This document shows positions 171 through 59,634 of a DNA stretch of 64,000 nt, in pieces. The translations under genes and the position numbers were made by a program. Location of the stretch: the sequence record MK250021.1. One strand, written 5' to 3'. Under the pieces are notes generated by a model, which saw nothing but the letters and a program-made list of their open reading frames with translations, was not told the origin of the DNA and ran no database searches. Numbering within the stretch: position 1 is the stretch's first letter; the number at the start of each line of letters is the position of its first letter.

Positions 171-3100
171 TTATGCATTTTTAAAGAAACCGTCTATTGT
201 AGTATTTTTAAAATAGAATGTAACTCTACCTTGCATAGGCATATTATTACCGTAATAATTATTGTTTGTATTACCTGATCTATTTGGTTGATGAACACCT
301 CGTTGTTGAGTAACAGCTCTATTACCTGGTTGAACAACTTGATGTTGCTATGTATTACCTTGTGACTTATTAGTATTACTTGGTGTATTTGTAGTAATAA
401 GGTCAAGTAATTCTCTAATACCATCAAATCTACTAAGAATCTTATTCTCATCAAGACTTTCAAACGCAAATCGCATTCTATCTACTGCAGTCGCTATATT
501 ATTAACTTTATTAGCAAACTCTTGCAACGCTTGATTACGTTTCTTTTCATTATTAATAATCTAATCATCTAATGCTTTAAGCGCTTTACGAGCAGATTCA
601 AGCTTTGTCGTATATATTTCTACTTTAGATGTTGTTACCTAAATCTAAGATGTAAATGTTTTTAACCTTGATGTATAAGTTCTTAATGAACCAGAAGTTA
701 CGTTCATATTTCTGTTTATTTCAGGAGACGTTAATCTCTTTATATTATTAATGAACATATCAATATGAAGGCCTAACTATTTCTAACTATTCATTTCTCT
801 TGAAAGATATATCATCTTCTCTGCAATTTCAAGATAAAGATCCATAAACTAACCTGTTGTTTGAAAATTAACTTTTTCTGAATTATTAGATAATGATCTC
901 ATCTATGATTCCATCTTTGTTAATACAGTTCCGAACTAAGATACAATGGATGATGGTTTAACTTTATCATTATATGTAAGTTGATTTATAATCTTTCTAT
1001 ATACACTGGCAATCTGATAAACGCCATCTACGAATTTCTTTGCATCTTTTGTACTCTATATAGATGTTTCGAATATCTTACTTGAGTTACTGAAATATGT
1101 TGCTAACTATGTCAATACAGATGTAAATTTAGTCGCAACTTCACTACCTTGTGATAATACTTTCCCTTGATCATCTGTCATCGCTTTGATAATTTTAGAT
1201 AAAGAATCTACTGATTTTTTAATAGTTCCCATTACCTACATAACTATTTTTGCAGTTGATTGAATCTTATTATATTTCTCCATATTTTCTTTAGTAGAAA
1301 GATTATCAGAAATAATAGTAATAAAATCTACAAATGCATTAGCGATATTTTTAGATATTGTTCTAATAAAATTAGGTTGTAAACACAAATAATCTTTAGA
1401 CTATGCCGTTGTTCCTTTCTTATTAGATGTTAATCCTAAGAATGGTTTTAATGTTGCTGAGAAATTTTTAACTGCAGTCATTATAGGATTTATAGTATTC
1501 TTTATAATATCTGCTATTGATTCTGCTTTTTCTATAAAACCTTCATTTGCAAAACTTTGTACAAGATAATTTATAAATTCTACAAACATTCTGCCAACTT
1601 CTCTTGCAGCCTATGTAAATGCTCCTTTTTTAAGTTTCTTAGTAATAGGTATTAATTTACCATCTTTATCTTTTTCATAATGATCTACATAAACGCCGGT
1701 AGCTAACTTTAATATTGCATCTACATATTTTCCTAATCCTTCCATAACAGGTCCAACAGAACCACCTATTGCATTTAATGCATCCTCTGTTTTATTTCCC
1801 CAAAAAGAACCATGTCTTTCAAATACTGTAACTAACTCATCTATAAAAATACCAAATGTAGTTGCTACCGAAATAGCTGCATTTAAGAAGTCATCCGGTG
1901 TTACTTTAGCTAAATGTGGAACTGTATAATTACCGTCTTTATCTTGCATATAGTAATCTGTATATGTTCCTGTTGCTAGTTTCATTATTGCATCAACAAA
2001 TTTACTAACACCATCCATAATAGGCATAATAGAATCTTTCATTGCATCCATTGCCCATATCATATTAGGTTGTAATTGTTTAAATGATGTCCCAAGCTAT
2101 TCTATAAAATTACCAAATGAAGCTGATACAAATATAGCAGATGTAAAGAATATAGAAGGGTCAACCTCTTCATATTCAGGTTTACCATTTTTATCATATC
2201 CTGTTACTATTTGCATCGTTGCAACTTTAATAACTGTATCAACAAATTTAGAAACTGCATCCATAACGGGTTCCATTACCTATCCAACAGTAGATATTGC
2301 TAACATTGCATTAACTGACATCTTATCAAACGCGTCACTTAAACATTGTAAAAATATGCTAAACTATACAGATATAGCAAGAGCTGCGTTACTAAATTCT
2401 GTTGCTGTTAATTTCTTATATATTGGGTTCTTCTTATTATCATATCCTATAATATATGTTCCTGTTGCTAGTTTCATTACAACATCTACAAATTTTCCAA
2501 CAGTATCAATAATAGGATTAAGCGCTAATGTTAACACGCTTAATACAACAAGTTTTAAAGCAACCATTGCGTTAAATCCGGCACTTAATTTAGAAATAAA
2601 TGTTGTAAATCCATTTGTAACTGCTTCTGCTGCCTATTCAAATACAGTTGCTGGTAAATGTTCATACATAGGTTTACCATTATCATCATATCCTGCTATA
2701 TAATTCATTGTAGCAACTTTCATTATAATATCAATATATTTTGATATTGTATTTAATATAGGTCTTAATGCTAATGAAATAACTAATGCCATTGCAGTTC
2801 CATTAAAACCGCTAAATGCTTTAACAATAGCTTGCATAGATCCTAAAACACTATTTTTATCATCATTACCTTTACCTATCATCAATTCAGAAAATGTTTG
2901 AATCATCTTAGCATTACATATTTCTGTTATATATTTCATCTCAGAAACAGTTAATGCTAATACACCAAATACTGCCATAATAATAGGTGAAAAAGCTGCT
3001 GCCGCTGTTGCCTATACCATCTATACAGGATTTGGAGCTGCTGCTTTTATAACATCAAACATTACTTCAAATAATGTTACTGCAGTCTCCCCTGTTTTTT

Positions 3101-6100
3101 TAAGTTTCTCAGTATTATATGGTAACATTAATTCCAACGCTTTCATGAATAATATCATGGTTCCTGTTACAACAGTCATCACACCTGCAATTGCCGTCAT
3201 TACTACAGCACCTAATGTAATAAATGGAAGAATAGGCGTCATCGCACCTAATGCAGTCATAAATGTTCCCATAATAGTTAACAAACCTATCATTGTAGCT
3301 GCACCTAAAAATACTGCGCCACCTTTATTTAAATCATCAATTTTCTTTGCTTCCCATGCGAATAAAACCATTGTTCCTCCAACAATATCCATCACTGCAC
3401 CAATAGCGGACATAACAATACCACCTATAATAGTATCTGGTAAAAATTTCTCTAATTTAGAAACACCGTACATTACCAAACCCATTAGACCTAAAACACC
3501 TGCCATAACAGCAGCACCTAAAAATACTGCACCACCTTCATTTAATTCTAATATTTTCTTAGATTCTATTGCAAATGCTAAACATGCAGTCCCTATTACT
3601 AACATAACTATTGCAACTGCAGTCATAATAACTGCACCAACTGCTAATTCAACTGCATACTTATCTGCGAATTTTCCTATAAAGAATAATACAGTTCCAA
3701 ATATCGCTAATGTTCCTATCACAACACCTGCACCTATTAATGCGTCGTCCCACATTTTACCAATAGGAATCAATATATCTTTAACAATCAATGATATACC
3801 TAATAAAATAAATGCCATTGCCGCTGTTGCAAATATTGCATATGCTGCTTTCTTACCATCTACTTTAGCCAAGAAATAAGTACCTGCAATAAGAGTAATA
3901 ATAATGAATAATGTAATACCCATTCCTATACCTGCTTCTTTACCATTCTAACCTATAGGAATAAGTAAATCTTTTGTAATCAATGCAATACCCATATAAA
4001 TAATTGCAAGAGTAGCAGTAGCAAGAACACCCCATAAGGCTTTCTTTCCATTTACCATATTCAATACATAAACGCCTGCAACTAATCCTGCTATTATAAA
4101 CATTGTTACTATTGCACCTAAATAAACTTCCGGCGCTTTCTTTCCAATAGGTATTAAAAACGCAACAGATATAATAGCAACCAATGCAAACACAGCAGAT
4201 ATTTTAATAAGATTATTTACCCCTCTATCTATACGTTTACCATGTTTATCTAATGATTTAACTGCAAATATGCCTAATGCTATAATAAAAGATATAACCA
4301 ACGCACCTTTTGATACATCATCTAATCTCTTGCCAATAGGTGCCAATAATGTTGCTGACACCAAAGCTATAATTGCAAATACAGCAGAAATCTTTAACAT
4401 TGCATCTGTAGCGTATGTTAATTTCTTATTACCTATTTTAGACAATTTATTAACAATGAAAATAGTTCCTGCAGTAAATAATGTAAGTATTCCTATAGAT
4501 GCAAGTATAGTTTCCGTACTATTATTTTTAACAGTTAACGATAATAATAACATTGATACAGATAATGACATAATCATTATTCCAATACCAGTTAAAACAC
4601 CCTGTACATTTTTAAGGCTCTTATCTAATTTCTTCTCTGATAAATCTTCTATCAAACTCTTAAATCCAGAAACAGCAACTCTCATAACAATTAAACTTGC
4701 TACAACTGCAGTTAATCCAACAATCTTAGTTACAATAGATAATCCTATAATAATACCGCCTATCATACCTATTGCTGAACTTAAACTTCTTATTATCACC
4801 TATGCTCCTTTTACATCTTTAACTTTTAATTTTTTAGCTAAATCTGTAATAGTATTCTTCATGAATTTAATCAAATACCTAACTACTAAAACAGATTCAA
4901 TTATTGTTTTAAAAGATGTTAGCTTAATAGTTAATGCAATGAATACAATACCGTATAATAATGTTTTCAATGCATTATTCCATGCATTCATAAAAGATGA
5001 TAAAACTTTAACTTGTTTTACATCCCATTTTTCTTTTAATATTGTGTTAAAGAAATCTACTATTTTCTATGCACGTTTCTGTGTTAATGATTTTACAGCA
5101 AACATGAAATTAAGAATCTATATCTTCTTAATATCAAATATTACATTTAATAGCTATACCATACTATTAACAGTTTGTGCAACCGTTTTATTATCTGGTA
5201 TTTCCGTTGCAAATGCGACAAAGAAACTCGCAAGCATTTTAGCAGTAATAGGATTCAATACCTTCATTACTTTAAATATAGAAAACTTCTATTCAGGATC
5301 TGCTATCTTTACTAAAGGATCTAATATACCACCAATATATTTAACGTTCTCACTTATTTCTTTTCCTTTTAAATATTTAGCGATCTATCCTATGAACTAA
5401 CCTAATTGTCTGCCTAATAACCAACCTCTTATAGGATTAAGACTTATCTACATTTTAAAAACATTTGATGTTACCAATGCGGATAATCCTCCCATCAAGT
5501 CTCCAATGGGTTTAATTATTTTTTGAATATCTTTATTTTTTAATTTCGTTTTACTAATAGACGAAACTAATGCAGATATAAATTTGCCTAAACGTTGTGC
5601 AGTTTTAACATCAAGCTTCCCAATATTTTCCTATAACTTAATCATATCAAGAGCAACAAGTTTGGACATTGTTTCAACAACTGCTTTAATTATACCGACA
5701 CTTCGTCCTACTGATTTAGAATTCTATATTGTTAACCCTTGTATAAAATCAACTATTTTTTTTGCGCCTTCTGCATTTATTTCTGTCATTTTATTAATAG
5801 CTTTCAGAAAACTATCAATATTTGTAAATGTATTGTCATCAACTTTAAGACTTGATAAAACTGTATTTACATTTCCTATAGATGTGGCAACTTTATTCAA
5901 AACATCATTGTCAATCTATTCCATGGATACAAGTCCTTTTGACAACTTCTCCAACTATTCTCCAACAGTTGCTGCTGATTCCTCTTTAGCAGTCTCAACG
6001 ATACCCTATAACAAACTGATTATAGTAGAATCAGCTTTCTGTTCAATAGTTTCTTTCTTTTTCTCCTATTGCTGACTTACCATAGTGTCCAAAATATTAA

Positions 6101-6140
6101 ATATACCGTTAAGTGCTTCTTCTGAAGACATTTGTGCCAT
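171..6140 (-). CDS. Tape-measure-like protein, ~1989 aa with TAG=Gln
   Basis: Track ORFs 1401-1589, 1611-2063, 2364-2567, 2634-2978, 3021-3923, 3948-4799 and 4800-4991 share one frame. From ATG 6140 (MAQMSSEEAL) to TAA 171-173 the only stops are ~35 TAG. The protein has long hydrophobic/amphipathic helical repeats. Confidence 0.7.
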
Positions 6141-13028: not shown

Positions 13029-13709
13029 TTACTTCTTATATAAAATATTATCAATCATTCCTTTAGAACCATATGATTTTGCTTCTTCTGCTGTCATCCA
13101 AAAATCTCTATCTGCATCAGATTTAATTTTTTTCATTGTTTGCCCAGAATGATTTGCAATAATATCATAAAGTTCTGTTTTTAACTTATTTATTTCTTTA
13201 CATGTAATTTCTATATCACTTGCTTGGGTATGATCTCCAGTAGATGACATAGGTTGGTGAATCATTACACGTGAATGTGGTAATGCGTATCTCTTTCCTT
13301 CAGTTCCTGCACAAAGTAATATACTAGCCATACTAGCTGCCATACCGGCACATATAGTAGATACATCAGACCTTATAAATTGCATTGTATCATATATCTC
13401 TAATCCTGAATATACATCACCACCTGGTGAATTAATATAAATAGAAATATCAGTATTATCTACATTATCAAGATATAATAATTGAGATGTAATAATATTA
13501 GCACTTTCTGCTGTTACAGGATTACCTAAGAAAATAATTCTATCCATCATCAATCTTGAGAATACATCCATTTGTGATACGTTAAGTTGTCGTTCCTCAA
13601 GTATAGTAGGATTTTGATAACCCATATTTATACCATTCATATAATCATGTAAGTAAAGACTACTTACATTTCTTGAATTCATAAACTTTTCAAAATCAGT
13701 TTTAATCAT
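13029..13709 (-). CDS. clpP: ATP-dependent Clp protease proteolytic subunit
   Basis: DVFSRLMMDRIIFL, YINSPGG, MAASMAS (catalytic Ser), RVMIHQP (His), RDFWMTAEEA. Confidence 0.97.
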   Translation of the reverse strand: MIKTDFEKFMNSRNVSSLYLHDYMNGINMGYQNPTILEERQLNVSQMDVFSRLMMDRIIFLGNPVTAESANIITSQLLYLDNVDNTDISIYINSPGGDVYSGLEIYDTMQFIRSDVSTICAGMAASMASILLCAGTEGKRYALPHSRVMIHQPMSSTGDHTQASDIEITCKEINKLKTELYDIIANHSGQTMKKIKSDADRDFWMTAEEAKSYGSKGMIDNILYKK

Positions 13710-14202
13710 CTATATTATAGTATTTCTTTCTAAAACATTTTTTTAGTAATGATACAACATGAATATTAGGAAATTCACAAGGATTATTAGGATTTGTTTC
13801 ATTATAAATATCGGGATAACAATCTAATATAAATTTAACAACTCCTTGAGATCTAGATACTCCAGCTGAACAATGAACATAAATATCTTTTCCTAAATTA
13901 TTCTCTATAAAATTAAATAATTCATTTGCTTGATTATCTGTTAATCCTTTAATTGAATTTGCATATTTAATTTCATCTTCTGTTATATCATCTCCATATG
14001 CATATAATAAATTATAATCTGTAATATCATAAAAGTCTAAATTAATAACATTATCTCTTGATTTAAATATATGATATTCATCTTTTGCATTTGGTTCACA
14101 TATAGATATTATTGCTATATTATCTGGTAATGTATTGTTATCCCATTTATTTTTATTCATTAACGATTTAAATCCGTCAAATCCTGTACACCAAATTTTC
14201 AT
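13702..14202 (-). CDS. Dual-specificity/protein-tyrosine phosphatase-like protein
   Basis: VHCSAGVSRS CX5R active-site loop. Confidence 0.85.
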   Translation of the reverse strand: MKIWCTGFDGFKSLMNKNKWDNNTLPDNIAIISICEPNAKDEYHIFKSRDNVINLDFYDITDYNLLYAYGDDITEDEIKYANSIKGLTDNQANELFNFIENNLGKDIYVHCSAGVSRSQGVVKFILDCYPDIYNETNPNNPCEFPNIHVVSLLKKCFRKKYYNIDD

Positions 14203-14837
14203 AATTTACTTAATTGAATTTCTAATTCATGTATATGTGATAATTCTTTATCTATCTCATCATTTAAATAATCTATTCTATCTTGTGATTTTTTAATTAA
14301 ACGTTTAAGTTCATCTGATAATATATTATTTTCATCAAAATAATTTGAAATAATTTTTTTAATATTATCTATTCCGTTAACAAATGTTTTAAATTCATCA
14401 TCTGTTAATTTAAAAGAAATTTGATTATTTAAATTATAAACATATATTTTTTCTTTTAATGATTTACATTCTTTTAAAAAGAGTTCTATATTTTCATCTA
14501 TTATAAAATCTAAATCATAATCAGTAAATTTGACAAAAGTATTAATTTCAAAATTATCATACTTTGGATTAATAAATACGTCGTTAAATATATAATTTAC
14601 ATAATAGAATAAATCAACTCCATAAATATCATGAAACGAATCTGTATGACATACTATAAAATCTCCTAATTTCATATTAGAAAAATATCCATAATCGAAA
14701 TCAAATATTTTTATTGTTCTATTTAATAAATCAATTGGTATATTATCTTTTAAAATTTTAGGAAAATCATTTTCATCAGGACATTCTAATAATTTATGAA
14801 TATCCTGATATATGTTTTTTAATTTCTCATATTCCAT
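14199..14837 (-). CDS. Hypothetical protein, 212 aa
   Basis: Intact ORF overlapping its neighbours' stop/start codons. Confidence 0.7.
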   Translation of the reverse strand: MEYEKLKNIYQDIHKLLECPDENDFPKILKDNIPIDLLNRTIKIFDFDYGYFSNMKLGDFIVCHTDSFHDIYGVDLFYYVNYIFNDVFINPKYDNFEINTFVKFTDYDLDFIIDENIELFLKECKSLKEKIYVYNLNNQISFKLTDDEFKTFVNGIDNIKKIISNYFDENNILSDELKRLIKKSQDRIDYLNDEIDKELSHIHELEIQLSKL

Positions 14838-14839
14838 AT

Positions 14840-15529
14840 TTAAATAAACTTTTTAATATATTTTAATGTATCATGAATATCTTGAGAAAACTTAAACAAT
14901 GCTTCCTTTGTTTTAAGATTAATATCTTTATATAGTTGTTCTTTCGTTTCAAACCCTATAGCATCATCTGATTTCATCCATGATTTCTGTATAACTGCAG
15001 TATGCCTATTACTATCATTAATAGTAATATTATCCCAATTATTACCATATATATTAATTTCTGTATATACAATAGTTACTCTATTATTAATAATATTTAC
15101 ATCTTCTAACATAATATAAGTATCATTAATATTATAATCAAAACCACATGGTTCTACACCATATGTTATATCTTTATAAAAATCATTATCTACTTTTCGC
15201 ATAACTTTACCAGTATCTAAATAATTATGCTGAATAAAATCACGTAATTCAATATTATATTGAGATATAAAATTACCGCATGGACATTGTTCAGTCAAAA
15301 ATATTTGCATATTATATGGTAAATATCTAAAATCTTCATTATTAACATTTAAATAACGACGTTTTACTAATTTAAATGTATAATCAATATTATTGATATT
15401 AATAGTTACTTCTTCCTTTGCACAAAAATCTTGATATGTATGCAACTTATTTAAAAGACGTTTAAATAATGTAGCAACTCTATCACAACCTAAATCATTT
15501 ACTGAAATATCATATACTTCAAAATTCAT
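14840..15529 (-). CDS. Hypothetical protein, 229 aa
   Basis: Intact ORF. Confidence 0.7.
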   Translation of the reverse strand: MNFEVYDISVNDLGCDRVATLFKRLLNKLHTYQDFCAKEEVTININNIDYTFKLVKRRYLNVNNEDFRYLPYNMQIFLTEQCPCGNFISQYNIELRDFIQHNYLDTGKVMRKVDNDFYKDITYGVEPCGFDYNINDTYIMLEDVNIINNRVTIVYTEINIYGNNWDNITINDSNRHTAVIQKSWMKSDDAIGFETKEQLYKDINLKTKEALFKFSQDIHDTLKYIKKFI

Positions 15530-15563
15530 AGTTATATTATTTTTTAATTAAACATTCTATTAA

Positions 15564-15576
15564 TACAAAGATACAT
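15564..15576 (-). promoter_or_regulatory. Class I promoter
   Basis: TACAAAGATACAT on +; heads the operon ending in clpP. Confidence 0.7.
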
Positions 15577-15647
15577 AAAATTATTAAAAATAAAAAATAG
15601 TAATTAAGAAAACTAATATTAAATTTCTTAATTACTATATATTTTAA

Positions 15648-15854
15648 TTACTTTGATGACGAGCTAGATGATGATGGAAATAATAATTTAGCAACTGTCA
15701 TCAAACACAATGCATGAATATATGTAATTGTTGGTAAACCAAATAAATATGGCATAACATAATTCCAACAAATCATAAATATAATTGCACCTAAAATAAT
15801 AAATATAATTGCAACTAAAATAGTTACAATTGATGTCCATATAAAAGTTTTCAT
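15648..15854 (-). CDS. Small membrane protein, 68 aa
   Basis: Two hydrophobic helices. Confidence 0.7.
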   Translation of the reverse strand: MKTFIWTSIVTILVAIIFIILGAIIFMICWNYVMPYLFGLPTITYIHALCLMTVAKLLFPSSSSSSSK

Positions 15855-15950
15855 ATAATTTATTTACTTGTAATTAATGCAAATAGAATATTTGATAATA
15901 CATTAAATCTAAACTTCTTTTTTGCATATCTACCTTTATTTTTTATTTGT

Positions 15951-16175
15951 TCATACTTCATTATTTCTATTATTATAATAATTAATCAAATCAACTTTCA
16001 TTTCTTTATTAAATTGATTATTTCTTTTTCTATTTCTAATAACTCTATCTTCTGCTATTTCACAATTATAACGTTTCCATTTATTTAAAATAGAACGTCT
16101 ATACTTTGGTTTAATTTTATCTTTATTATCATGCATATAATCATATACAGCTTGTTCTTTAAAATTATTACTCAT
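15951..16175 (-). CDS. Hypothetical basic protein, 74 aa
   Basis: Intact ORF. Confidence 0.6.
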   Translation of the reverse strand: MSNNFKEQAVYDYMHDNKDKIKPKYRRSILNKWKRYNCEIAEDRVIRNRKRNNQFNKEMKVDLINYYNNRNNEV

Positions 16176-16209
16176 AGTATATTTTATAAAGATATTTTAT
16201 TTTCAAAAT

Positions 16210-17055
16210 AATAAAAAATAAACATCAAAATTGTGGTTCTAAATCTTACTGCTACTTACTAAGACTACAATTTTGATGTTTATAAAAGCAATCATTCATT
16301 ATCCTGCAGCATCCATATTAGTATAAGTTTCATTGCAATAGAACTTTACAACTATAGTGATAATCCACTTATACATTCTTTTACTCTAAAGTCTTTTATA
16401 TAACTTTATCATACATAATATATGTACTGTCCATCAATAAAAGGTTCTTTATTTCATCATGGTTTTATATCGTATAAACAACCCTCTGTATATCACTGAT
16501 TCATTTCTTTACATTTAGAAATCAGGGTCTTTAAGCCTCAACGTTTGGCTGTAACTATTATCCTCAACCATTACCAGATAATGTCATCTTGTTTTTGTGG
16601 TGCATCTCACATACCTCCTTTAATCATAAAACAAGCAAAACTACTAAGACAAATAACGTTTCTTAGAACTTCTACGAATTTACGCTCATATCAAATCATC
16701 ATCTGATATAGACACCTAAATTAAGTGAATAAAGTTTACGACTCAATATAAAATTTTATATCTCAACCTTTATCAAAAACGATTCATTAAATTCTTTTAA
16801 GGAACTTATTTCTAATTAAATGAAGGATTCATTTAAAATAGGTTCTCCCGAAAACATGCGGTTTATCCTTACTCATTATAATTATAATAAGCGTTGTTTA
16901 TAGCACTCATTAGAATTCATTATGTATTATCTAACTCTCATTTATAATATTCATAATTTATATGATATTAAAAGCAAAATGTCTAATATCATATTATAAA
17001 TTATTTGTCTCGTTAGATATTATCAAAATTTCAAAGATCTCTTCATTGTTATTTT
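16210..17055 (-). ncRNA. Candidate large structured ncRNA (~840 nt), family unassigned
   Basis: No track ORF and only very short ATG-started minus-strand ORFs even with TAG=Gln; class I promoter at 17064; many hairpins; long terminal stem plus T tract at 16213-16283. Confidence 0.6.
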
Positions 17056-17063
17056 ATTAACAA

Positions 17064-17075
17064 TACAAAGATACA
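17064..17075 (-). promoter_or_regulatory. Class I promoter
   Basis: TACAAAGATACA; followed by no ORF, only the candidate ncRNA. Confidence 0.7.
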
Positions 17076-17125
17076 CATTCTTTTTTAATAAAAAAAATAT
17101 TCTAAGAAAAAATTAAAAATATTTT

Positions 17126-17926
17126 TTATCTTACAAAACATGTTGCATATCCATGTTCAACCTTAATAAATAATACTTCACCATTTAACCACAATTTATC
17201 AAATGGCGTTTTATCACCATTTTCTTGCATATCTTTATGTTCATCAATAGCATATTTCTCAATGTCATCAATACTACCTTTATAATAATTCTTTATGTTA
17301 TCAGATTCAAGATATGCAATTCGCGACTTACATTCGTCAAGAAGTTCTTCAAATACAGGAACAGATTTATTACAAAATCTGTCATACTCATTCTGAAAAT
17401 TAATATTAGATGAACAAATACCATTTGTAATAATACGAGATACATTTTCAAGTTTCTCTAGATTATCAAGGTCTACATAAAAATCATCGCATGTAATATC
17501 ATTATCTTTATACATACCAATAACATGAACTTTTGCATTCCATAATTCACACCATTTATTTGCACCATCTTCTATAAGCTGTCCAAAATCATTATCATGA
17601 AAATCAAACATAATCATGAAATTTTTATCAACCTTAATATCACTAGTTTCATATGGATCACCTTTATACTTATGACCATCATAAAGACCTGTAAGATATG
17701 AAGAACGACTTATCCTTAAAATCTCTTTCAAACAAAAATCCTTAATTTTTTTATATTCTTCATCATTTAGATTATCAGTTCCATCAAGCAAATCTAATAC
17801 TGAGTCATAATATTTTTCTTCATTTTTTACATAGTCATAAGACATATCTACAAATGGCTTGCCGAACATACGAATTTCAGATTTATTCATATCTTCTTGC
17901 ATCTTCTTAAGATCTATTTCTTTCAT
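17126..17926 (-). CDS. Hypothetical protein, 266 aa
   Basis: Intact ORF. Confidence 0.7.
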   Translation of the reverse strand: MKEIDLKKMQEDMNKSEIRMFGKPFVDMSYDYVKNEEKYYDSVLDLLDGTDNLNDEEYKKIKDFCLKEILRISRSSYLTGLYDGHKYKGDPYETSDIKVDKNFMIMFDFHDNDFGQLIEDGANKWCELWNAKVHVIGMYKDNDITCDDFYVDLDNLEKLENVSRIITNGICSSNINFQNEYDRFCNKSVPVFEELLDECKSRIAYLESDNIKNYYKGSIDDIEKYAIDEHKDMQENGDKTPFDKLWLNGEVLFIKVEHGYATCFVR

Positions 17927-17939
17927 ATTTCTTAATTAT

Positions 17940-18881
17940 TTACATTGTTCCATCATTAGGTTGCAAACACATAATTCCACGTTCTCGCCACATCTTAACC
18001 ACTTTAGAAGAATCTTCCAATACAAACAATACATTATAATAAGGTTCAATATATTCCTTATATAAATTATATTTACAATCTGGACCCTTTGTAAAATTCT
18101 TCAAAGGTCTCATTAACACCTTATCAACATTACCAATAAGGTTATTCTTCAACCAATCTTCTGTTGCATGTCTAATATCGTCTGTATCTTCTCTACCTGT
18201 CAATATAATGACATCCACTGATTTATCGGCAATATATGTATTAACAAGTTGGCAAAGTTGCTTACATGGTTTATCATCCCTCATGCTATCAGCAGCACCA
18301 TTACCATAAAATGGCCGACCTTGAAGATTAAAACAAAGTGTAGCATCCATATCTACAAGAATACAATTCTTCTTCGTTTCATCAAACTTCTTAAAGCTAT
18401 TATATTGCTTATTATTAAGTTGTGTAGCAATAAAGTTTCTATATCGCCTATAAGTAGATTTGATAACGGATTCACCTATAGGATTAGATCTAAATGAATC
18501 TCTTCTAATACATTCCTCTACCGATACATCAAAGAAATCCTTAAATTCCAATGTATAATGATACTCATTATGTGTCTCATTATACTTATCAATTCTATCT
18601 TGCATTTCTTTCCATCCCTTTGGATTCAGGTTCATATTATCCATAATGATATTCCAACCTTTTTCCATAGGTGATTTAAAAAATGCATCTGTCATATCTT
18701 TAATAACAGAAAGTTTCTCACGTGATTCTACCCAATACTCACCGAACATGTTTCTAAGAGAATCCCAATTAATTCTAATTCTCTCAGTTGGTTTCTCCTT
18801 TACCCAATGTTCAGCGAATGTAGACTTACCAGACGCTTGAATACCTCTTGTCAATATAATTACCCTTTCTTTCATATTCAT
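17940..18881 (-). CDS. pseT: Polynucleotide 5'-kinase/3'-phosphatase (T4 PseT-like)
   Basis: P-loop GIQASGKST, RINWDSLR, HAD motifs DMDATLC, LTGRE, FVLED. Confidence 0.93.
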   Translation of the reverse strand: MNMKERVIILTRGIQASGKSTFAEHWVKEKPTERIRINWDSLRNMFGEYWVESREKLSVIKDMTDAFFKSPMEKGWNIIMDNMNLNPKGWKEMQDRIDKYNETHNEYHYTLEFKDFFDVSVEECIRRDSFRSNPIGESVIKSTYRRYRNFIATQLNNKQYNSFKKFDETKKNCILVDMDATLCFNLQGRPFYGNGAADSMRDDKPCKQLCQLVNTYIADKSVDVIILTGREDTDDIRHATEDWLKNNLIGNVDKVLMRPLKNFTKGPDCKYNLYKEYIEPYYNVLFVLEDSSKVVKMWRERGIMCLQPNDGTM

Positions 18882-18899
18882 ATTTTATTTAATTAGCAA

Positions 18900-18912
18900 T
18901 ACAAAGATACAT
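18900..18912 (-). promoter_or_regulatory. Class I promoter
   Basis: TACAAAGATACAT upstream of pseT. Confidence 0.7.
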
Positions 18913-19051
18913 AATTTTTAGGAAAATAAAAAATTAATTATTATCAAATACTATATTTTCAACAAAATTAAGTTTCTTATAATTTCTATTCTTTGAATAC
19001 TTATCGATTATTTTTAAAAAATCGACCATAAATCTATAATCAAATTCTGGT

Positions 19052-19270
19052 TTATTCATCTTTTAACATCATTGCAAGAATAACAGATTTCATACATGTC
19101 ATATATCCTTTAAGATACATATCTTTCAACATCAACCAAATTCTTTCAAATTCATCTGGTATCTTTTCACTTGTATCATCAGATATATTAGAGTTACCGA
19201 CAATAGTTTTAAGCTCTCGCCGTGCTTGATAATCAGCCATTGCATTTAATTTATTCTTATTAAATTCCAT
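19052..19270 (-). CDS. Hypothetical protein, 72 aa
   Basis: Intact ORF. Confidence 0.65.
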   Translation of the reverse strand: MEFNKNKLNAMADYQARRELKTIVGNSNISDDTSEKIPDEFERIWLMLKDMYLKGYMTCMKSVILAMMLKDE

Positions 19271-19273
19271 ATT

Positions 19274-19903
19274 TTATTTAGATTTTAATCCTAAACAATA
19301 TTCTTTATTAATATTATCAATAAAAGAATTAATTCTAATTCTTAGTAATTCTGATTCTTCTTCAAATTCCTTAATTTTATCAATGTCTTTTTTAATATCA
19401 TCTATATTATGATTTAACAAATATTCATACGTATTAGGTTTAGATACTTTAAAATAATAAATATCTTCATTCATAATATTATTATGATTTAAAGCACATA
19501 ATAAATGATAAGATTCCTCATTTGCAGATGAACCATGATAACCATATCCATCACTTTCAAAATATATACATAATGGTCCATAACTATAATGTCCACCTGG
19601 ATATACAGTTGTTCTTAATGAGTTAATATGAAATGATTTACATATATTATATTTCTTATCTAAATAATCATTCAATAACTTATTAATACTCATCATTTGA
19701 AGATCTAATAATCTATCTAAATTTATATCATTATTCTTACTTATATATACACTGGAAACTTCTTTTACAACTGAATCAATATCTAATTCATAATTCTCGT
19801 CTGTATATAAATGAAGAATACAAAGAAATAATCTATGTATATATTCTTTCTTATCGTAATTTATATATGCAGTTTTTAATTTTTCTACATAATCATCTGT
19901 CAC
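19274..19903 (-). CDS. Hypothetical protein, 209 aa
   Basis: Intact ORF (GTG start). Confidence 0.7.
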   Translation of the reverse strand: MTDDYVEKLKTAYINYDKKEYIHRLFLCILHLYTDENYELDIDSVVKEVSSVYISKNNDINLDRLLDLQMMSINKLLNDYLDKKYNICKSFHINSLRTTVYPGGHYSYGPLCIYFESDGYGYHGSSANEESYHLLCALNHNNIMNEDIYYFKVSKPNTYEYLLNHNIDDIKKDIDKIKEFEEESELLRIRINSFIDNINKEYCLGLKSK

Positions 19904-24217: not shown

Positions 24218-24259
24218 AATTAAAAATAATTTTTCAAAAAGAAATTTATAAATTAATTA

Positions 24260-24693
24260 NNNNNNNNNNNNNNNNNNNNNNNNNNNNNNNNNNNNNNNNN
24301 NNNNNNNNNNNNNNNNNNNNNNNNNNNNNNNNNNNNNNNNNNNNNNNNNNNNNNNNNNNNNNNNNNNNNNNNNNNNNNNNNNNNNNNNNNNNNNNNNNNN
24401 NNNNNNNNNNNNNNNNNNNNNNNNNNNNNNNNNNNNNNNNNNNNNNNNNNNNNNNNNNNNNNNNNNNNNNNNNNNNNNNNNNNNNNNNNNNNNNNNNNNN
24501 NNNNNNNNNNNNNNNNNNNNNNNNNNNNNNNNNNNNNNNNNNNNNNNNNNNNNNNNNNNNNNNNNNNNNNNNNNNNNNNNNNNNNNNNNNNNNNNNNNNN
24601 NNNNNNNNNNNNNNNNNNNNNNNNNNNNNNNNNNNNNNNNNNNNNNNNNNNNNNNNNNNNNNNNNNNNNNNNNNNNNNNNNNNNNNNNNNNNN
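24260..24693. other. Assembly gap (N run, 434 nt)
   Basis: Run of N. Confidence 1.
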
Positions 24694-24711
24694 TTTATAA
24701 TTTGTTGTAAA

Positions 24712-32207: not shown

Positions 32208-33953
32208 TTAGAAATTATCATATGTTTGTTCAAGCATCTTAACATAATCCATATGATAACCAAGAGGATGTTCTGATTCATTTACAGGTTTCATAATAGG
32301 TTTTTGAGAAACTTTATAACGTTTAACAAATTCTTCATTCATTATACGTTGTGCTTCTCTATTTCTAAGACCAGTTTTCTCCCAGAACTCATCAACATCT
32401 TGTTTAGTTTCAAGAACCCAATAACGTGCCATATTCTCAATAGCATCTTGCTCTTGAAGAGAAGCATGTGTGTAAAGTTCAATATCTTTAGGATCAGCTA
32501 ATCTCAACCAATTCTTAAGGATACGTTTCTCTGCAAGAAGTGGAACATTCCATTGATTGTTAATATCATCAATCTTATAGATATTATGTTCTACTACATA
32601 TTTCATACATTTTTTCTTCTATGTAGGTTTAAGAGCCGCAAATTTCGCGAAGTTATCTGGTGATAATGAAACAGAGAATGGATAACGTGAAATAATCTGT
32701 TCTTTAATTGCTTCCTTTTTTTCGAGATTATCAAGAAGATCTTGGAATTCCTCCATATCTTTATCAGTTTCAGCTGCAATTCTTTCTGCTTTTTCTGTAG
32801 ATGTTTTTGAATCTTCGTCAGCAGGCACAGAATCTTCTGCATCATCATTAGTTGTATCTGTATCAGAAACGTCTTCATCTTTTGAATTATCATCTGAATC
32901 AGCATCACCATCATCGGCTTTATCCTCATCAGACTATCCTTCTACATCAAGAATATCTGCACGTTTTTCGGCTTTCTCATCATCGTCTGTATTTTCATCG
33001 GAATCACTATCAGCATCTTCTGATGTAATATCGAGGATTAATGCGCGTTTCTTTTCTTTCTCATCATCTGTAGGTTCTGATTTTGAATCTTCACTCTTAT
33101 TATCTTTTGTATCATTATTTTCATCTTTATTATCAGATGAATCGTCAGAACTACTACCATCTGGTGTTACGTCTGCTTCTGGTAATTTGAATTCTTCTTC
33201 ATCTTCTTCAAGTAATGGTTTTGATAAATCTTTCAAATTAACCGGTTTGTTTTTCATTTCCATACATTTTTCATTTATTGGAGCATCTTGCTCAAGTTCA
33301 TTGACTGTAACACCTTCCATAAGGACCTTATATTTCTTATTAGTTGTTTCTTTCTCTGATTTTTGAGCTGATACTGATTCATTGAGATATGACATAGTAT
33401 TAACTCCCAATGATTCATTAACCCTATCAAGTTTCGCTTCAGCGAAACCAGGAGTACAAACAATATCATATGTGAAAATCTGAGCGATTTCTACCTCATG
33501 TGTTTTCTCATCTACATCACCTGCTGCACGAGAAGAAACAAACAATGGATAACCTGCTTCTACTAATTCCTATGCAATTTTACCATTAGGTGTATCAAGA
33601 ATTTCAAGTTTACCCATTACATTATGATTTTCCTAATCATACCAAAGGTCTGTAATCTTATGTGAAGCTTCCTTTAACTAAATATCAAAACGTCCTTCAG
33701 GATGATCCAATTCACCAAGAATTGAACCACTTTCCTTAATCATCTCTCGTAAATATCCAAGGTGACGTAAAACTTCTTTTTCTGGATAACTTCTATTATT
33801 ACGGTTAATTACAACATGACCTGGAACAGAACATGCAGTAAATACACCGGAGAATATATATTTCTTATTATTTGGTGTACTGTCAAGAGACTCGTTAAGC
33901 GTAAGAGGCTACAATGACTTACTTTTTATCATTAACTTATTACTTTTTGTCAT
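32208..33953 (-). CDS. Prohead core protease (T4 gp21-like) fused to an acidic linker and a helical C-terminal domain, 581 aa (6 TAG)
   Basis: NRNNRSYP, GELDHP, DTPNG, VSSRAAG motifs; in frame through TAG with track ORFs 32934-33545, 32619-32828 and 32208-32606. Confidence 0.85.
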
Positions 33954-34001
33954 AAAACAAAATAAATCTTATTTTTATTATTTATTTACTTTATTTATAG
34001 T

Positions 34002-35345
34002 TTATTTTCTATAAATTAACATTTTATCGATATTTGTAGATATATGTTTACTTTTAAATAATCCAGTATTTGGATCAATAAAATCATATAAATTACTACC
34101 TAATAATAGCCAGATATTTGTAATTATAATTTTATTTTCAGATAAACTATAATCGCATAATACATATATAGGATTAGTTGCATTATTTTTGTCTCTCTAA
34201 TTCTTTGTTAAAGTTATATTTCCGAATTTTTCATTATATGATTTTATTTCAAATGTTTGTTTTAGTTCTTTATTTTTCTTGGGGTTAAATTCTATTAAAA
34301 AATCATGTACTTTTCCTCTTTTTGTAGTATTTATATTTTCTTTCTAACAATGAAATTCAGTTTTAAACATATCAATCATAAATTTAGCAACATATTGCTC
34401 TATTAACTAACCAGCAATATTAATCATAAGGTATTTATAAAAATCAGAATTAACAATATTATTAATAGGTATCTAAATATTTAATACAATTTCTGGTTTA
34501 AATGTAGTTTGAAAATATTTGAAAATTTTATCTTTTATTTCTCCATTATTAAATTTATTTGTTAATCTTTGATCTTCTTCATTAATAATATCTTCATTAA
34601 TACTTTCATATATCATCTTTAAATCATTACTAGATATTTTATGATATGATTCTTTTACAGATATAGGTTCAACTCTACTCGTAAAATCTTCGATACATTT
34701 CTTTGTATCAAATTCTATATTTCGTCCTAAACCTCTTAATTTATCTTTATCTTTTTCTTTATCTAATATTCCTTCTTTTACCAATTCATCGAATGCATAT
34801 TTGTCATCAGAAATATATGTTGTTCCATTCTTTTTCCATTCATCTGTATATGTTTCAGTTTTACTATCATAACTAGCATCACAATTACCAAATAATCTTT
34901 TTGTATCTTTCCTGTATGCATTTCCTTTCTCTGGTATATAACATCTGAATTGCTTTCCATCATAATAAATCATTACACATAATGGGCATTCCCAATCACC
35001 TCCAACCATCATTACAATATACGGACATCCTTTAACTGTTCGTAATCCACCGGTAATATCATAATTTTCCCAATCAGGTTGAATTCCTTTAAAATCTTTC
35101 TTAATGATAGTTTCACCTTTCTTATCATTATAATATATTGTTCTTATAGCTCTTGGTAATGATGATATAATTTTGGAAGTAGAATTAGTTTTATTCATTT
35201 TATCGGTAGTCCAACTATCATCTTTACATGTATCAAGAATAAATTTCTTTGCTTTCTCTCCAAACTATTTCTCTGATAATTTAGCAATCTTTCTACCACC
35301 TTTTCTTAATTTTACATCATTATATAATGAATAATATTTTCCCAT
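34002..35345 (-). CDS. Two-domain protein, 447 aa (5 TAG): GGDWECP domain plus a possible PD-(D/E)xK nuclease
   Basis: ATG 35345 to TAA 34002; C-terminal HDFLIEF...TFEIKS. Confidence 0.6.
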
Positions 35346-35347
35346 TG

Positions 35348-36823
35348 TTAACTATATTTTATTTTATATTTTTTAATTTCAGATGGAACAGTATATAAGA
35401 ATTTTATAAATTCATCTAACGTCCATTCTGCATATGAATCAAATTCGTCTTCATTAATATCCAAACTTAATAATTCTCTATTAACATAATAATCAATATT
35501 TGATTTATCTATTATTAAATTATCATTTAACCATAAATCATTAATAACTTTATTCTTTATTAATAATTTTATATTTGGATAATTTTTACCTTTATTATCT
35601 GTATCATTCATTGTAACACTATCGCATACTTCATATAATAATTCAAATTCTCTGAATGTTAATACATCAATAGACATACAATCATCATTATCATATGTGT
35701 CACTATCTTGACCATCCAAATATATAACATCTTCTAATGGGAAATAATAATCATTATCATTTAAATTCTATATTTCATCATCAACAATAACATTATAAAT
35801 TTTTGCATAATTTCCATTTGGATCACCATAACCATAATCAAATTCACCAACATCAAATGTTAATGTTCCTCTATCATATCCTAATTTTAGAAAATCCCAT
35901 GAATTTAATAATCTTCCAGAATTTCCCTTATTACTCATAGGTGTACCTTTATCAAAAAATGCAATATTATTCATGTTATATTTTCTTAAATCTATACATG
36001 AAAAATCCTAATCAAATGAACCACATAGAAATAACATATTCTTAAATGATTTTACACTATTCATATTCCATTTCTATATAGGTTGATTAAACTTCTTACA
36101 TAAACTAAACATGTTATCCATACATTCTACTTTTGATACATCCCAATTACTAATATCCTAATTAAATAGTTCACAGTTATTAAACATATCGGTCATGTCA
36201 AGAGCATTCTCAGTATTCCATTTAGTTATATCACCATTAAATTTCCTACATGTATCAAACATACCTATAAAAAATTCAACATTATGAACGTCCCAATTAC
36301 TTATACCATTATTACCATCATATTCTTTACAGTAAATAAACATGTTTGTCATTGTACATACATTAGATGTATTCCATTTACTAAGATCACATATCTATAT
36401 CTAATTGCCAAATACTTGTTTCATTCTTGTTACATGTGCAGTATTCCAATCCTCTACATGCCAAAATATAGGATACTTATCTCCCATCTATGGTTTGAAC
36501 TAAAGTAAATAATCCAATTTCTTTACATTACGTATATCAATCCAATTAAGATTAAATTCATGTATATCATCTTTAAATAACTAAGGTTTAATCTTATTAT
36601 AAATTAAATCATGTAATTCATTATAATCCGCAACTTTATATTGAAACTATGGTGTTAATACTAATTCTAGATCATCATCAGATACAGTAAAACCATTCTT
36701 TAACTTATTTAATATATTATCGACATCTCGACCTATTAATATATCACTATGATCAATTTCATTATCAAATATATCGTCATCATCAAATAATGATTCCATT
36801 AAATTATATATATATTTCTTCAT
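35348..36823 (-). CDS. BspA/DUF285 26-residue-repeat protein, 491 aa (10 TAG)
   Basis: Repeats WNTSNVCTMTNMF, WDVHNVEFFIGMF, FN*DISNWDVSKV, FNQPI*KW. Confidence 0.85.
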
Positions 36824-58413: not shown

Positions 58414-59634
58414 TTATATACATTCTCTTTTATTATTTTCTAAATATTCATTTATTATAGTTTTTATTATTTCTATCTTATTGCTCCATATAGGAAGATA
58501 ATTCAGATTATTCATTTTCGCAGTTTGACATTTAAAAGGATCAATGATTGACCAAACATTTACAGCAGATTTATATTGTTTTGATATTTCTGCTTTTTGT
58601 TTCCACTTATTTAATAAATCAATATCATCTTTATTATCTTCATCAAATAAATGTTTCCCATGTGTCCAAAATGCGTTTATCTCTATAAATAAATCTAATG
58701 GTTTTATATAGAAATCTACATGGAATGGATAACGCTCATCAACATTTACATTAAACTATATATCATCTTTATCAAATATTGTTTGTAAATATTCATATGT
58801 TTGATATTCTGGTTTTGACATACCAAAATTATCTTTATATTTTTTCTTTATTGTTTTTACATATTGATCAAACTAATATTGATGAAAATTTTCTAATGAA
58901 CCATATTTTTTAATAACAGTTTCTTTTGTCTTTTCTTTATTATTAAATGTTGGATCCCCATATAATTCTAATTTTGTTTCTTTAATTTTGTTTTTTATTT
59001 CTTCATTTTTTGCAGGGTTATCAACGCCATATTTTTTAATAACAGTTTCTCTTGATTTTTCTTTATTATTATCTGACTAAAAACTATATTTACACCCATA
59101 TTTTTTTAAACATGTATTAATTGATTTCTATTTAACTTCTTCATTCTATCCTGAAAATTCTACANNNNNNNNNNNNNNNNNNNNNNNNNNTGTCTTCTAT
59201 AAATATTCCGATGTTTTTGTATATGATGAAACTCCATATTTTTCTAAACATGTTTGTTTTATTTTATCTTTAACTGATTTTAACTACATTTGATGTTCAA
59301 CACCATATCGTTCTTTTAATGTATTTTTTATTTTATTCTATACATTAACTGAATTCATTACACATCGTGAATTTGAACAAAATTTACGAAATCCTCTACT
59401 ATAACAATTAAATCTCACAGGTTTCCCACATGTTTCACATACTGGTCTTATTTCTATTTTATTTACAATACGGTATATTGTCTCCTATATAGATTCGCTA
59501 TCATTATATCTATTAATTAAATAATCATAAATATCTTGATGTTTATTTAACCAAGATAATCTTGTATAATTTTTTGCTAACTAATTCTTTTTTGTTATAA
59601 ATTTTTCTTTTATGTAGTCATCATTAATAATCAT
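58414..59634 (-). CDS. Homing endonuclease (Vsr/EDxHD-like) with KYG repeats, many TAG, spans a 26-nt gap
   Basis: CETCG/CSNSRC, repeated T..KKYG units, VDFYIKPLDLFIEINAFWTHG; absent from the track. Confidence 0.78.
59165..59190. other. Assembly gap (N run, 26 nt)
   Basis: Run of N inside a repeat-rich endonuclease gene. Confidence 1.

Follow-up and report, generated by a model that had tools for sequence, protein, structure and literature searches.

Only a few classes of bacterial or phage RNA longer than 500 nt with complex conserved structure are known, and each of them (OLE, GOLLD, ROOL and raiA) has revealed unexpected RNA architecture. GOLLD (Rfam RF02032), named for lake samples and Lactobacillales, and ROOL (Rfam RF03087) are phage-borne RNAs of unknown function that form RNA-only cages, and GOLLD also has a less conserved 5' half (PMC12286853); the cages are homo-oligomers held together by kissing loops. 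GOLLD is encoded in phages or prophages, often next to tRNA genes, whereas ROOL is a large ornate RNA of phages and prophages from gut and rumen habitats with no known protein partner. OLE and raiA are abundant, large and highly conserved non-coding RNAs of Firmicutes and Actinobacteria chromosomes, not of phages, and their structures were established by covariation long before any function was known. Long structured leaders such as T-box and riboswitch-attenuator units place a structured RNA and an intrinsic terminator between a promoter and the ORFs that they serve.

Here we describe a gene-free 0.86-kb stretch of a Lak-B megaphage of Prevotella, within a 64,000-nt window of record MK250021.1 (the whole stretch of DNA that was analysed, called the window below), which encodes an abundant, highly folded non-coding RNA on the minus strand (17060-16205) that matches no Rfam family. 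The RNA resembles GOLLD in being phage-encoded, about as long (0.8-1 kb for GOLLD), in having its own transcription unit, a less conserved 5' part and a strongly conserved remainder, and in carrying variable peripheral hairpins. A divergent GOLLD lies 5 kb upstream in the same genome and shares a 16-nt 5' motif with it, but the GOLLD covariance model itself, that of the conserved 3' domain, gives no match here. Like ROOL it is a large RNA of gut phages, but it is longer than ROOL (574-position model), is not matched by the ROOL model and lies in no tRNA island. OLE and raiA are likewise not matched in Rfam. With long leaders it shares the layout of promoter, structured RNA, intrinsic terminator and then ORFs with no intervening copy of the promoter motif, but it is three to eight times larger, no known aptamer or T-box motif is present, and the terminated RNA accumulates far above the downstream message. 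We found no paper that describes this RNA, and none linking Lak phages to structured RNAs or reporting GOLLD in Lak or Prevotella phages.

The locus and its conservation in Lak megaphages

The original prediction, made from sequence alone, was of an ORF-free structured RNA of about 840 nt at 16210-17055 with its own host-type promoter and terminator, and as an observation it is confirmed. No ORF of 60 aa or more exists in 16176-17125 in six frames under table 11, TAG=Q (the Lak code) or table 4; the longest frames under TAG=Q or TGA=W, 59 aa and 100 aa, lie on the opposite strand and were not treated as genes. No ORF of more than 20 codons that starts at a conserved ATG is kept across lineages, and indels of 1, 2, 9 and 18 nt, which are not all multiples of three and fall in hairpin tips, rule out a hidden reading frame. 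ARAGORN finds no tRNA or tmRNA, nor any tRNA in the whole 64-kb window, so that of the two genomic traits of GOLLD, phage origin and tRNA neighbourhood, the first is seen here and the second is not, which leaves the comparison on this point undecided. A search of Rfam, including ROOL, GOLLD and OLE, had been named in advance as a check: Rfam 15 gives nothing at the gathering threshold, and at E<=10 only chance snoRNA and miRNA hits were obtained for the 1.5-kb piece 15900-17400 and for the 0.65-0.7-kb pieces 16300-16950 and 1700-2400 of the A/C-like copy L001. There is thus no match to GOLLD, ROOL, RNase P, group I or II introns, 6S, SRP or any ribozyme family in these searches. The nearest record has a single GOLLD match, at the other locus; a ROOL search of three Lak records was also without a hit, but its control genomes were silent too, which makes that one search weak.

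On the minus strand the stretch begins just downstream of a -7 box, TATCTTTG (17073-17066), embedded in a motif of roughly 45 nt (17112-17066) that consists of a T-run, 9-10 nt and TATGTATCTTTGTA. The motif occurs 8 times in the window, always on the minus strand (10857, 15577, 17077, 18913, 27956, 30455, 44298 and 48032), and about 18 times in 249 kb of the nearest record, and it is invariant in all homologs. In the 7 other copies read here an ATG follows within a few tens of nt, whereas at this locus the next ORF is about 890 nt away. The predicted start of transcription is about 17062-17058. TAnnTTTG is the Bacteroidetes -7 consensus, and the box fits it, but no TTTG is seen near -33, where a T-run stands instead, and no transcript 5' end was mapped, so the assignment to the housekeeping sigma factor is left undecided. 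The stretch ends in an intrinsic terminator (16284-16200), an interrupted hairpin of 13+4+9 pairs (16284-16217) with a conserved apical loop (GUAAGUAGCAG) followed by a U tract, where a 17-bp stem had been predicted. The hairpin carries 12 pairs with compensatory changes and a consensus-fold z-score of -9.5; a simple terminator scan missed it because its loop is long.

The 950-nt stretch 16176-17125 is 100% identical to Prevotella phages Lak-B2 and Lak-B4, 99.8-99.9% identical to the other Lak-B genomes and about 78% identical to Lak-A1, A2 and C1, all of them megaphages of roughly 540-550 kb that read TAG as glutamine. A BLAST search of phage records, an 18-mer scan of IMG/VR and of metagenome contigs, and contigs found through the two flanking proteins together recovered about 25 copies in about 10 lineages, 77-100% identical. 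These copies, numbered L below, fall into a B-like group (the window, L039, L050, L042, L047, L069 and L070; 83-96% identical to each other outside the near-identical window/L039 pair), an A/C-like group (L001-L003, L022, L023, L031 and L041) and a third group (L036-L038, L040 and L051). The RNA ranges from 861 to about 1020 nt. A covariance model of one domain (R1, see below) finds exactly one copy in each of the complete Lak-A2 and Lak-C1 genomes. An 18-mer scan of 596 Gb of prokaryote genomes (185,579 species) gave 12 hits, all of them chance matches of 18-24 nt, and six of the 14 metagenome hits were chance matches too. Five of the contigs recovered through the downstream protein (L044, L045, L046, L049 and L052) end inside the RNA, suggesting that assemblies break there, for example because of strain variation in the variable arms or uneven coverage.

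Where both flanks are on the contig, the gene order is always a T4-type polynucleotide kinase-phosphatase (PNK; 17940-18881, minus strand), an ORF of roughly 270 aa, the RNA, a 74-aa ORF, further small ORFs and then the protease ClpP (13029-13709, minus strand). The 74-aa protein (16175-15951, minus strand) is basic and always adjacent to the RNA. Neither it nor the upstream 266-aa protein has family, Atlas or PDB relatives, and AlphaFold2 predicts for the 74-aa protein a single long helix at low confidence (pLDDT 67). Gene callers extend this protein upstream by 18 residues (MKFNFFLF...) in 97-aa forms (proteins P0005, P0009, P0012 and P0013), but those residues are the translation of the terminator's 3' arm and U tract, so the extension is probably an annotation artefact. 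Distant homologs of the 266-aa protein (loci L071 and L072) showed no 1-kb gap and no hit to the covariance model. Between the B and A clades the core of roughly 640 nt (about 16935-16320) is 87-88% identical in 100-column windows, whereas most of the flanking coding sequence is 50-80% identical and the 266-aa gene 46-58% over most of its length.

Secondary structure and compensatory changes

Compensatory change among homologs had been set beforehand as a condition that the RNA reading must satisfy, and it is observed. RNAalifold on 17 full and 4 partial copies gives 220 pairs in 36 helices, of which 35 pairs carry compensatory changes, against 1-9 when the 3' partners are slid by 1-3 columns; 98.9% of cells are paired, against 40-47% in the slid controls. 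The structure was, however, derived from the same alignment on which it was scored, the diversity is shallow, most core pairs never vary, and several long-range helices differ between models and are not settled. The consensus contains 22-27 G-U pairs, which fit only the minus strand: its energy is -52 to -98 kcal/mol on the minus-strand RNA, against +10 to -30 when mirrored. The minus strand is therefore the RNA strand, which agrees with the orientation of promoter and terminator. Wobble intermediates (A-U, G-U, G-C) are seen, and L069 and L070 show G-U intermediates of the double changes in L047. Other lines of evidence are weaker: the whole-length minimum-energy z-score is -3.3, consensus folds in sliding 120-column windows give only -1 to -4 except at the terminator, and single-sequence minimum-energy folds, tried as an unbiased structure for counting covariation, were too noisy (23 compensatory types against 5-16 in controls).

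The RNA opens with a 5' module (17063-17028), a small hairpin (17063-17046) and then the 16-nt motif (17043-17028; ATGAGTTCTTTGAAAT in other lineages) that recurs in the GOLLD-like RNA. It is followed by a hypervariable arm, V1 (17025-16927), a long irregular hairpin in the window. The first 130-250 nt after the 5' hairpin exist in three unalignable versions, with the arm ranging from about 100 nt up to 220-235 nt; the arms that were extracted fold into long hairpins in the B-type and third lineages (z -0.6 to -4.0), while the A/C arm was not recovered whole. Domain 1 (16924-16785) is a multi-branch domain closed by an 11-bp helix (16924-16912/16795-16785) and containing hairpins at 16892-16871 and 16836-16816 and the helix 16870-16866/16803-16799. 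Modelled independently (model R1), it has 46 pairs with 99.7% of cells paired, against 33-49% when slid, and 0 of 500 shuffles were as high on every measure. Seven genuine compensated pairs lie in four helices; four further pairs counted as changed on both sides come from one spurious row and are discounted. In domain 2 (16781-16676) the helix 16774-16768/16734-16728 carries variable hairpin V2, which is 65 nt longer in L047, and is accompanied by hairpin 16727-16713 and variable hairpin V3 (16711-16688), which differs completely between clades. Length changes are confined to discrete sites flanked by invariant anchors, and unrelated sequences form hairpins at the same anchored positions in different clades. 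A consensus helix, 16781-16777/16704-16700, conflicts with V3 and is not relied on.

Further downstream, hairpin 16666-16644 has an invariant loop containing the palindrome AACGUU (16656-16651), and helix 16641-16626/16598-16583 encloses hairpin 16618-16599. Compensated pairs in this segment (16666-16583) are 16666/16644 (GC/CG), 16665/16645 and 16635/16588 (UA/CG). The palindrome is the only lead towards kissing loops; because the loop never varies it offers no covariation between palindromes, and multimer formation was not measured here. An invariant AAAGGAGG at 16621-16614, complementary to the 3' tail of 16S rRNA, is partly paired in the model. Domain 3 (16581-16454), the most G+C-rich and nearly invariant core, is closed by 16581-16566/16464-16454 and has three inner hairpins; its compensated pairs are 16568/16462 (CG/GC) and 16517/16508 (UA/CG), with alternative pairings of AGCC and GGGUU that the analysis did not separate. 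Domain 4 (16451-16320) consists of variable hairpin V4 (16443-16393), followed by conserved hairpins at 16373-16353 and 16352-16332, although two models differ on which helix encloses these hairpins. A separate model (R2) has 98.7% of cells paired but only one compensated pair. V4 carries five compensated pairs in the full consensus, and its tip is deleted in L044 and L045 while its base is kept.

Most stems named in the original prediction are real. TTAAATGAA/TTCATTTAA is confirmed with 2 compensated pairs, CTAAGA/TCTTAG is confirmed with C-G changing to G-C, and TATCAGAT/ATTTGATA is confirmed in the B clade but replaced by a different hairpin in the A clade. The nested 5' arm TATCTAAC/GTTAGATA is the minimum-energy fold in the B-type copies that were folded; in L069 it reads AATCTAAC/GTTAGATT, as noted by eye. 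The exception is TAATGAGTG/CGCTTATTA, which is probably not the native pairing, as CGCTTATT pairs better with the downstream AATGAGT in a helix with two compensated pairs.

Transcripts of the locus and the neighbouring GOLLD-like RNA

The lack of any transcript would have spoken against the prediction, but contigs of the stretch are seen in RNA-seq runs. A 31-mer index found parts of the stretch in 8 RNA-seq runs of animal gut samples from two studies. When contigs of four of these runs were compared with 14000-19400 at 80% likeness or more, one contig each of 770 nt (depth 22.8), 697 nt (331), 665 nt (149) and 333 nt (5.3) covered 16304-16993, with loose 3' ends that reach the terminator region, at about which the contigs stop, whereas the flanking 4.5 kb is represented only by short contigs at depth 2-10. 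DNA contamination would cover the flanks evenly, so the simplest reading is a discrete transcript that is much more abundant or more stable than its neighbours. Contig depth is a crude measure of expression, contigs show neither strand nor exact ends, and the runs hold relatives of the window sequence, not the sequence itself. No cleavage or joint signal appears in the contigs other than length variants of hairpins.

A second ORF-free stretch, of about 1.1 kb (22632-21530, minus strand), is 84% identical to Lak-A and Lak-C over 96% of its length, and by eye the block at about 22050-21640 is nearly invariant. It has visible compensatory changes and its own compensated terminator. Positions 22174-21736, in its 3' part, match the full 416-position GOLLD model at 62.8 bits (E 7e-16), and the Lak-A2 copy scores 65.2 bits; both are below the gathering score of 150, so that the search at that threshold missed them, and a 1.7-kb search also missed the match, probably because of speed filters. 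This match serves as a positive control for the negative GOLLD searches of the first RNA. Twenty runs from 10 studies hold part of this second RNA, 7 of them on record as RNA. The two RNAs show no overall similarity (Smith-Waterman score 76 against shuffles at 71 +/- 12), and the best duplex between them, -29 kcal/mol, is no better than shuffles at -27 to -31. Both do begin with a small hairpin followed by the same 16-nt motif, at 17043-17028 and 22610-22595, which is an exact match in the L050 and L042 copies and at 2 mismatches or fewer occurs nowhere else in the window; it may be a common 5' module, such as a stability, processing or binding site. Lak-A1 (locus L074) has an insertion of about 240 nt, relative to Lak-A2 and Lak-B, just upstream of the GOLLD-like RNA. 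A stretch at 24218-24711 holding 434 N (masked or an assembly gap) was left untouched.

A large RNA of unknown function

The interpretation of the stretch as a large non-coding RNA, possibly of a new class, is supported by conservation, covariation, strand-specific G-U pairs and metatranscriptome contigs confined to the stretch. We read it, with moderate confidence, as the gene for a stand-alone RNA of about 0.86 kb (0.86-1.0 kb in other lineages), specific to Lak megaphages of Prevotella and forming a new family within the known category of large ornate phage RNAs. In this view host RNA polymerase would start at a phage promoter with the Bacteroidetes-type -7 box, the transcript would fold into a small 5' hairpin, a freely evolving 5' arm and a conserved core of four multi-helix domains with variable-length peripheral hairpins, and transcription would end at the long terminator, with only a small fraction appearing to read through into three small ORFs (74, 33 and 68 aa). 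The existence of the RNA, its bounds as set by the recurrent promoter and compensated terminator, its strand, conservation and structure, and its representation in metatranscriptome assemblies far above its neighbours come from the analysis itself, whereas action in trans, any partner or multimer and early timing are inferences. Trans action is inferred from abundance and the terminator alone, as no functional data exist, and a role as a folded scaffold or assembly, in which invariant loops and junctions would be binding or self-association surfaces, is drawn by analogy with GOLLD and ROOL; it would be a third kind of large ornate phage RNA beside them. One possible partner is the adjacent basic 74-aa protein. 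That the RNA is early-expressed, as originally predicted, rests on a promoter motif that in the window precedes only genes lacking in-frame TAG, while the TAG-rich ORFs (171-6140, 32208-36823 and 58414-59634) have none; the genes around the RNA contain no in-frame TAG either. This fits an early class of genes read in the standard code, as recoding is thought to mark late genes (bioRxiv 10.1101/2021.08.26.457843). The term ornate is plausible but rests on secondary-structure models only.

Other readings are less likely, but the cis-leader, ribozyme and peptide readings are not excluded. The strongest of them, though still unlikely, is that the RNA is a cis-acting leader or attenuator of the three small ORFs, whose fold, perhaps on binding a ligand or protein, would set how often the terminator is read through. 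Indeed no copy of the promoter motif lies between the terminator (16217) and the ATG at 16175, the next being at 15577; the RNA and the 74-aa ORF are adjacent in every contig; the apical loop of the terminator is sequence-conserved while its stems covary; and low-depth contigs exist over 16019-16134. On the other hand, a conserved core of 640 nt is far larger than any known leader, the terminated species is about 100-fold deeper than the ORF in the same run (331 against 2-3), and the GOLLD-like RNA nearby has the same layout although GOLLD is not regarded as a leader. A ribozyme or other catalytic RNA, which might process itself or act on host or phage RNA, seems more doubtful: long invariant single-stranded and junction segments in a large multi-domain fold and the syntenic PNK gene two genes upstream would be in keeping with it, but no group I or II intron, RNase P or ribozyme family matches in the Rfam searches, the contigs carry no cleavage or joint signal other than length variants of hairpins, and the link to the neighbouring gene is weak.

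It is also improbable that the locus is a small-peptide gene or dual-function RNA. A 13-codon ORF (16605-16564, MHHKNK...), preceded by the Shine-Dalgarno-like AAAGGAGG at an 8-nt spacing, has the same start, stop and length in all 17 full copies, but five of its 13 residues vary, and some of the variable codons are helix positions compensated from outside the ORF (16635/16588 and 16568/16462). The Shine-Dalgarno-like bases are partly paired in the model, the start-codon contexts read in this window show no such Shine-Dalgarno sequence, and the peptide would explain about 40 of 860 nt. The ORF is probably incidental to the RNA structure. Least likely is a DNA-level element, such as a replication-origin primer transcript or packaging region, or a decaying non-functional spacer. 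The region is AT-rich and full of hairpins, and both strands fold better than shuffles, yet the G-U pairs and the compensation pattern fit one RNA strand only, the core is under strong purifying selection, GC skew shows no turning point here and the transcript is abundant.

More tentatively, we speculate that Lak megaphages carry a set of at least two unrelated giant structured RNAs, this new class and a divergent GOLLD, both tagged by a common 5' module, and that the new RNA would form its own kind of RNA-only or RNA-protein assembly, or have a new catalytic activity, used in the early takeover of Prevotella. We consider this possible rather than probable. The RNA is a further class beside OLE, GOLLD, ROOL and raiA, found in the largest known gut phages, and its neighbour puts GOLLD-type RNAs in a Bacteroidota phage, which makes the new RNA a direct target for cryo-EM and chemical probing. 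Its short conserved core could additionally serve as a transcript marker of active Lak infection. With two different ornate RNAs in one genome that share a 5' motif and have defined promoters, the Lak megaphages give a natural system for asking what such RNAs do.
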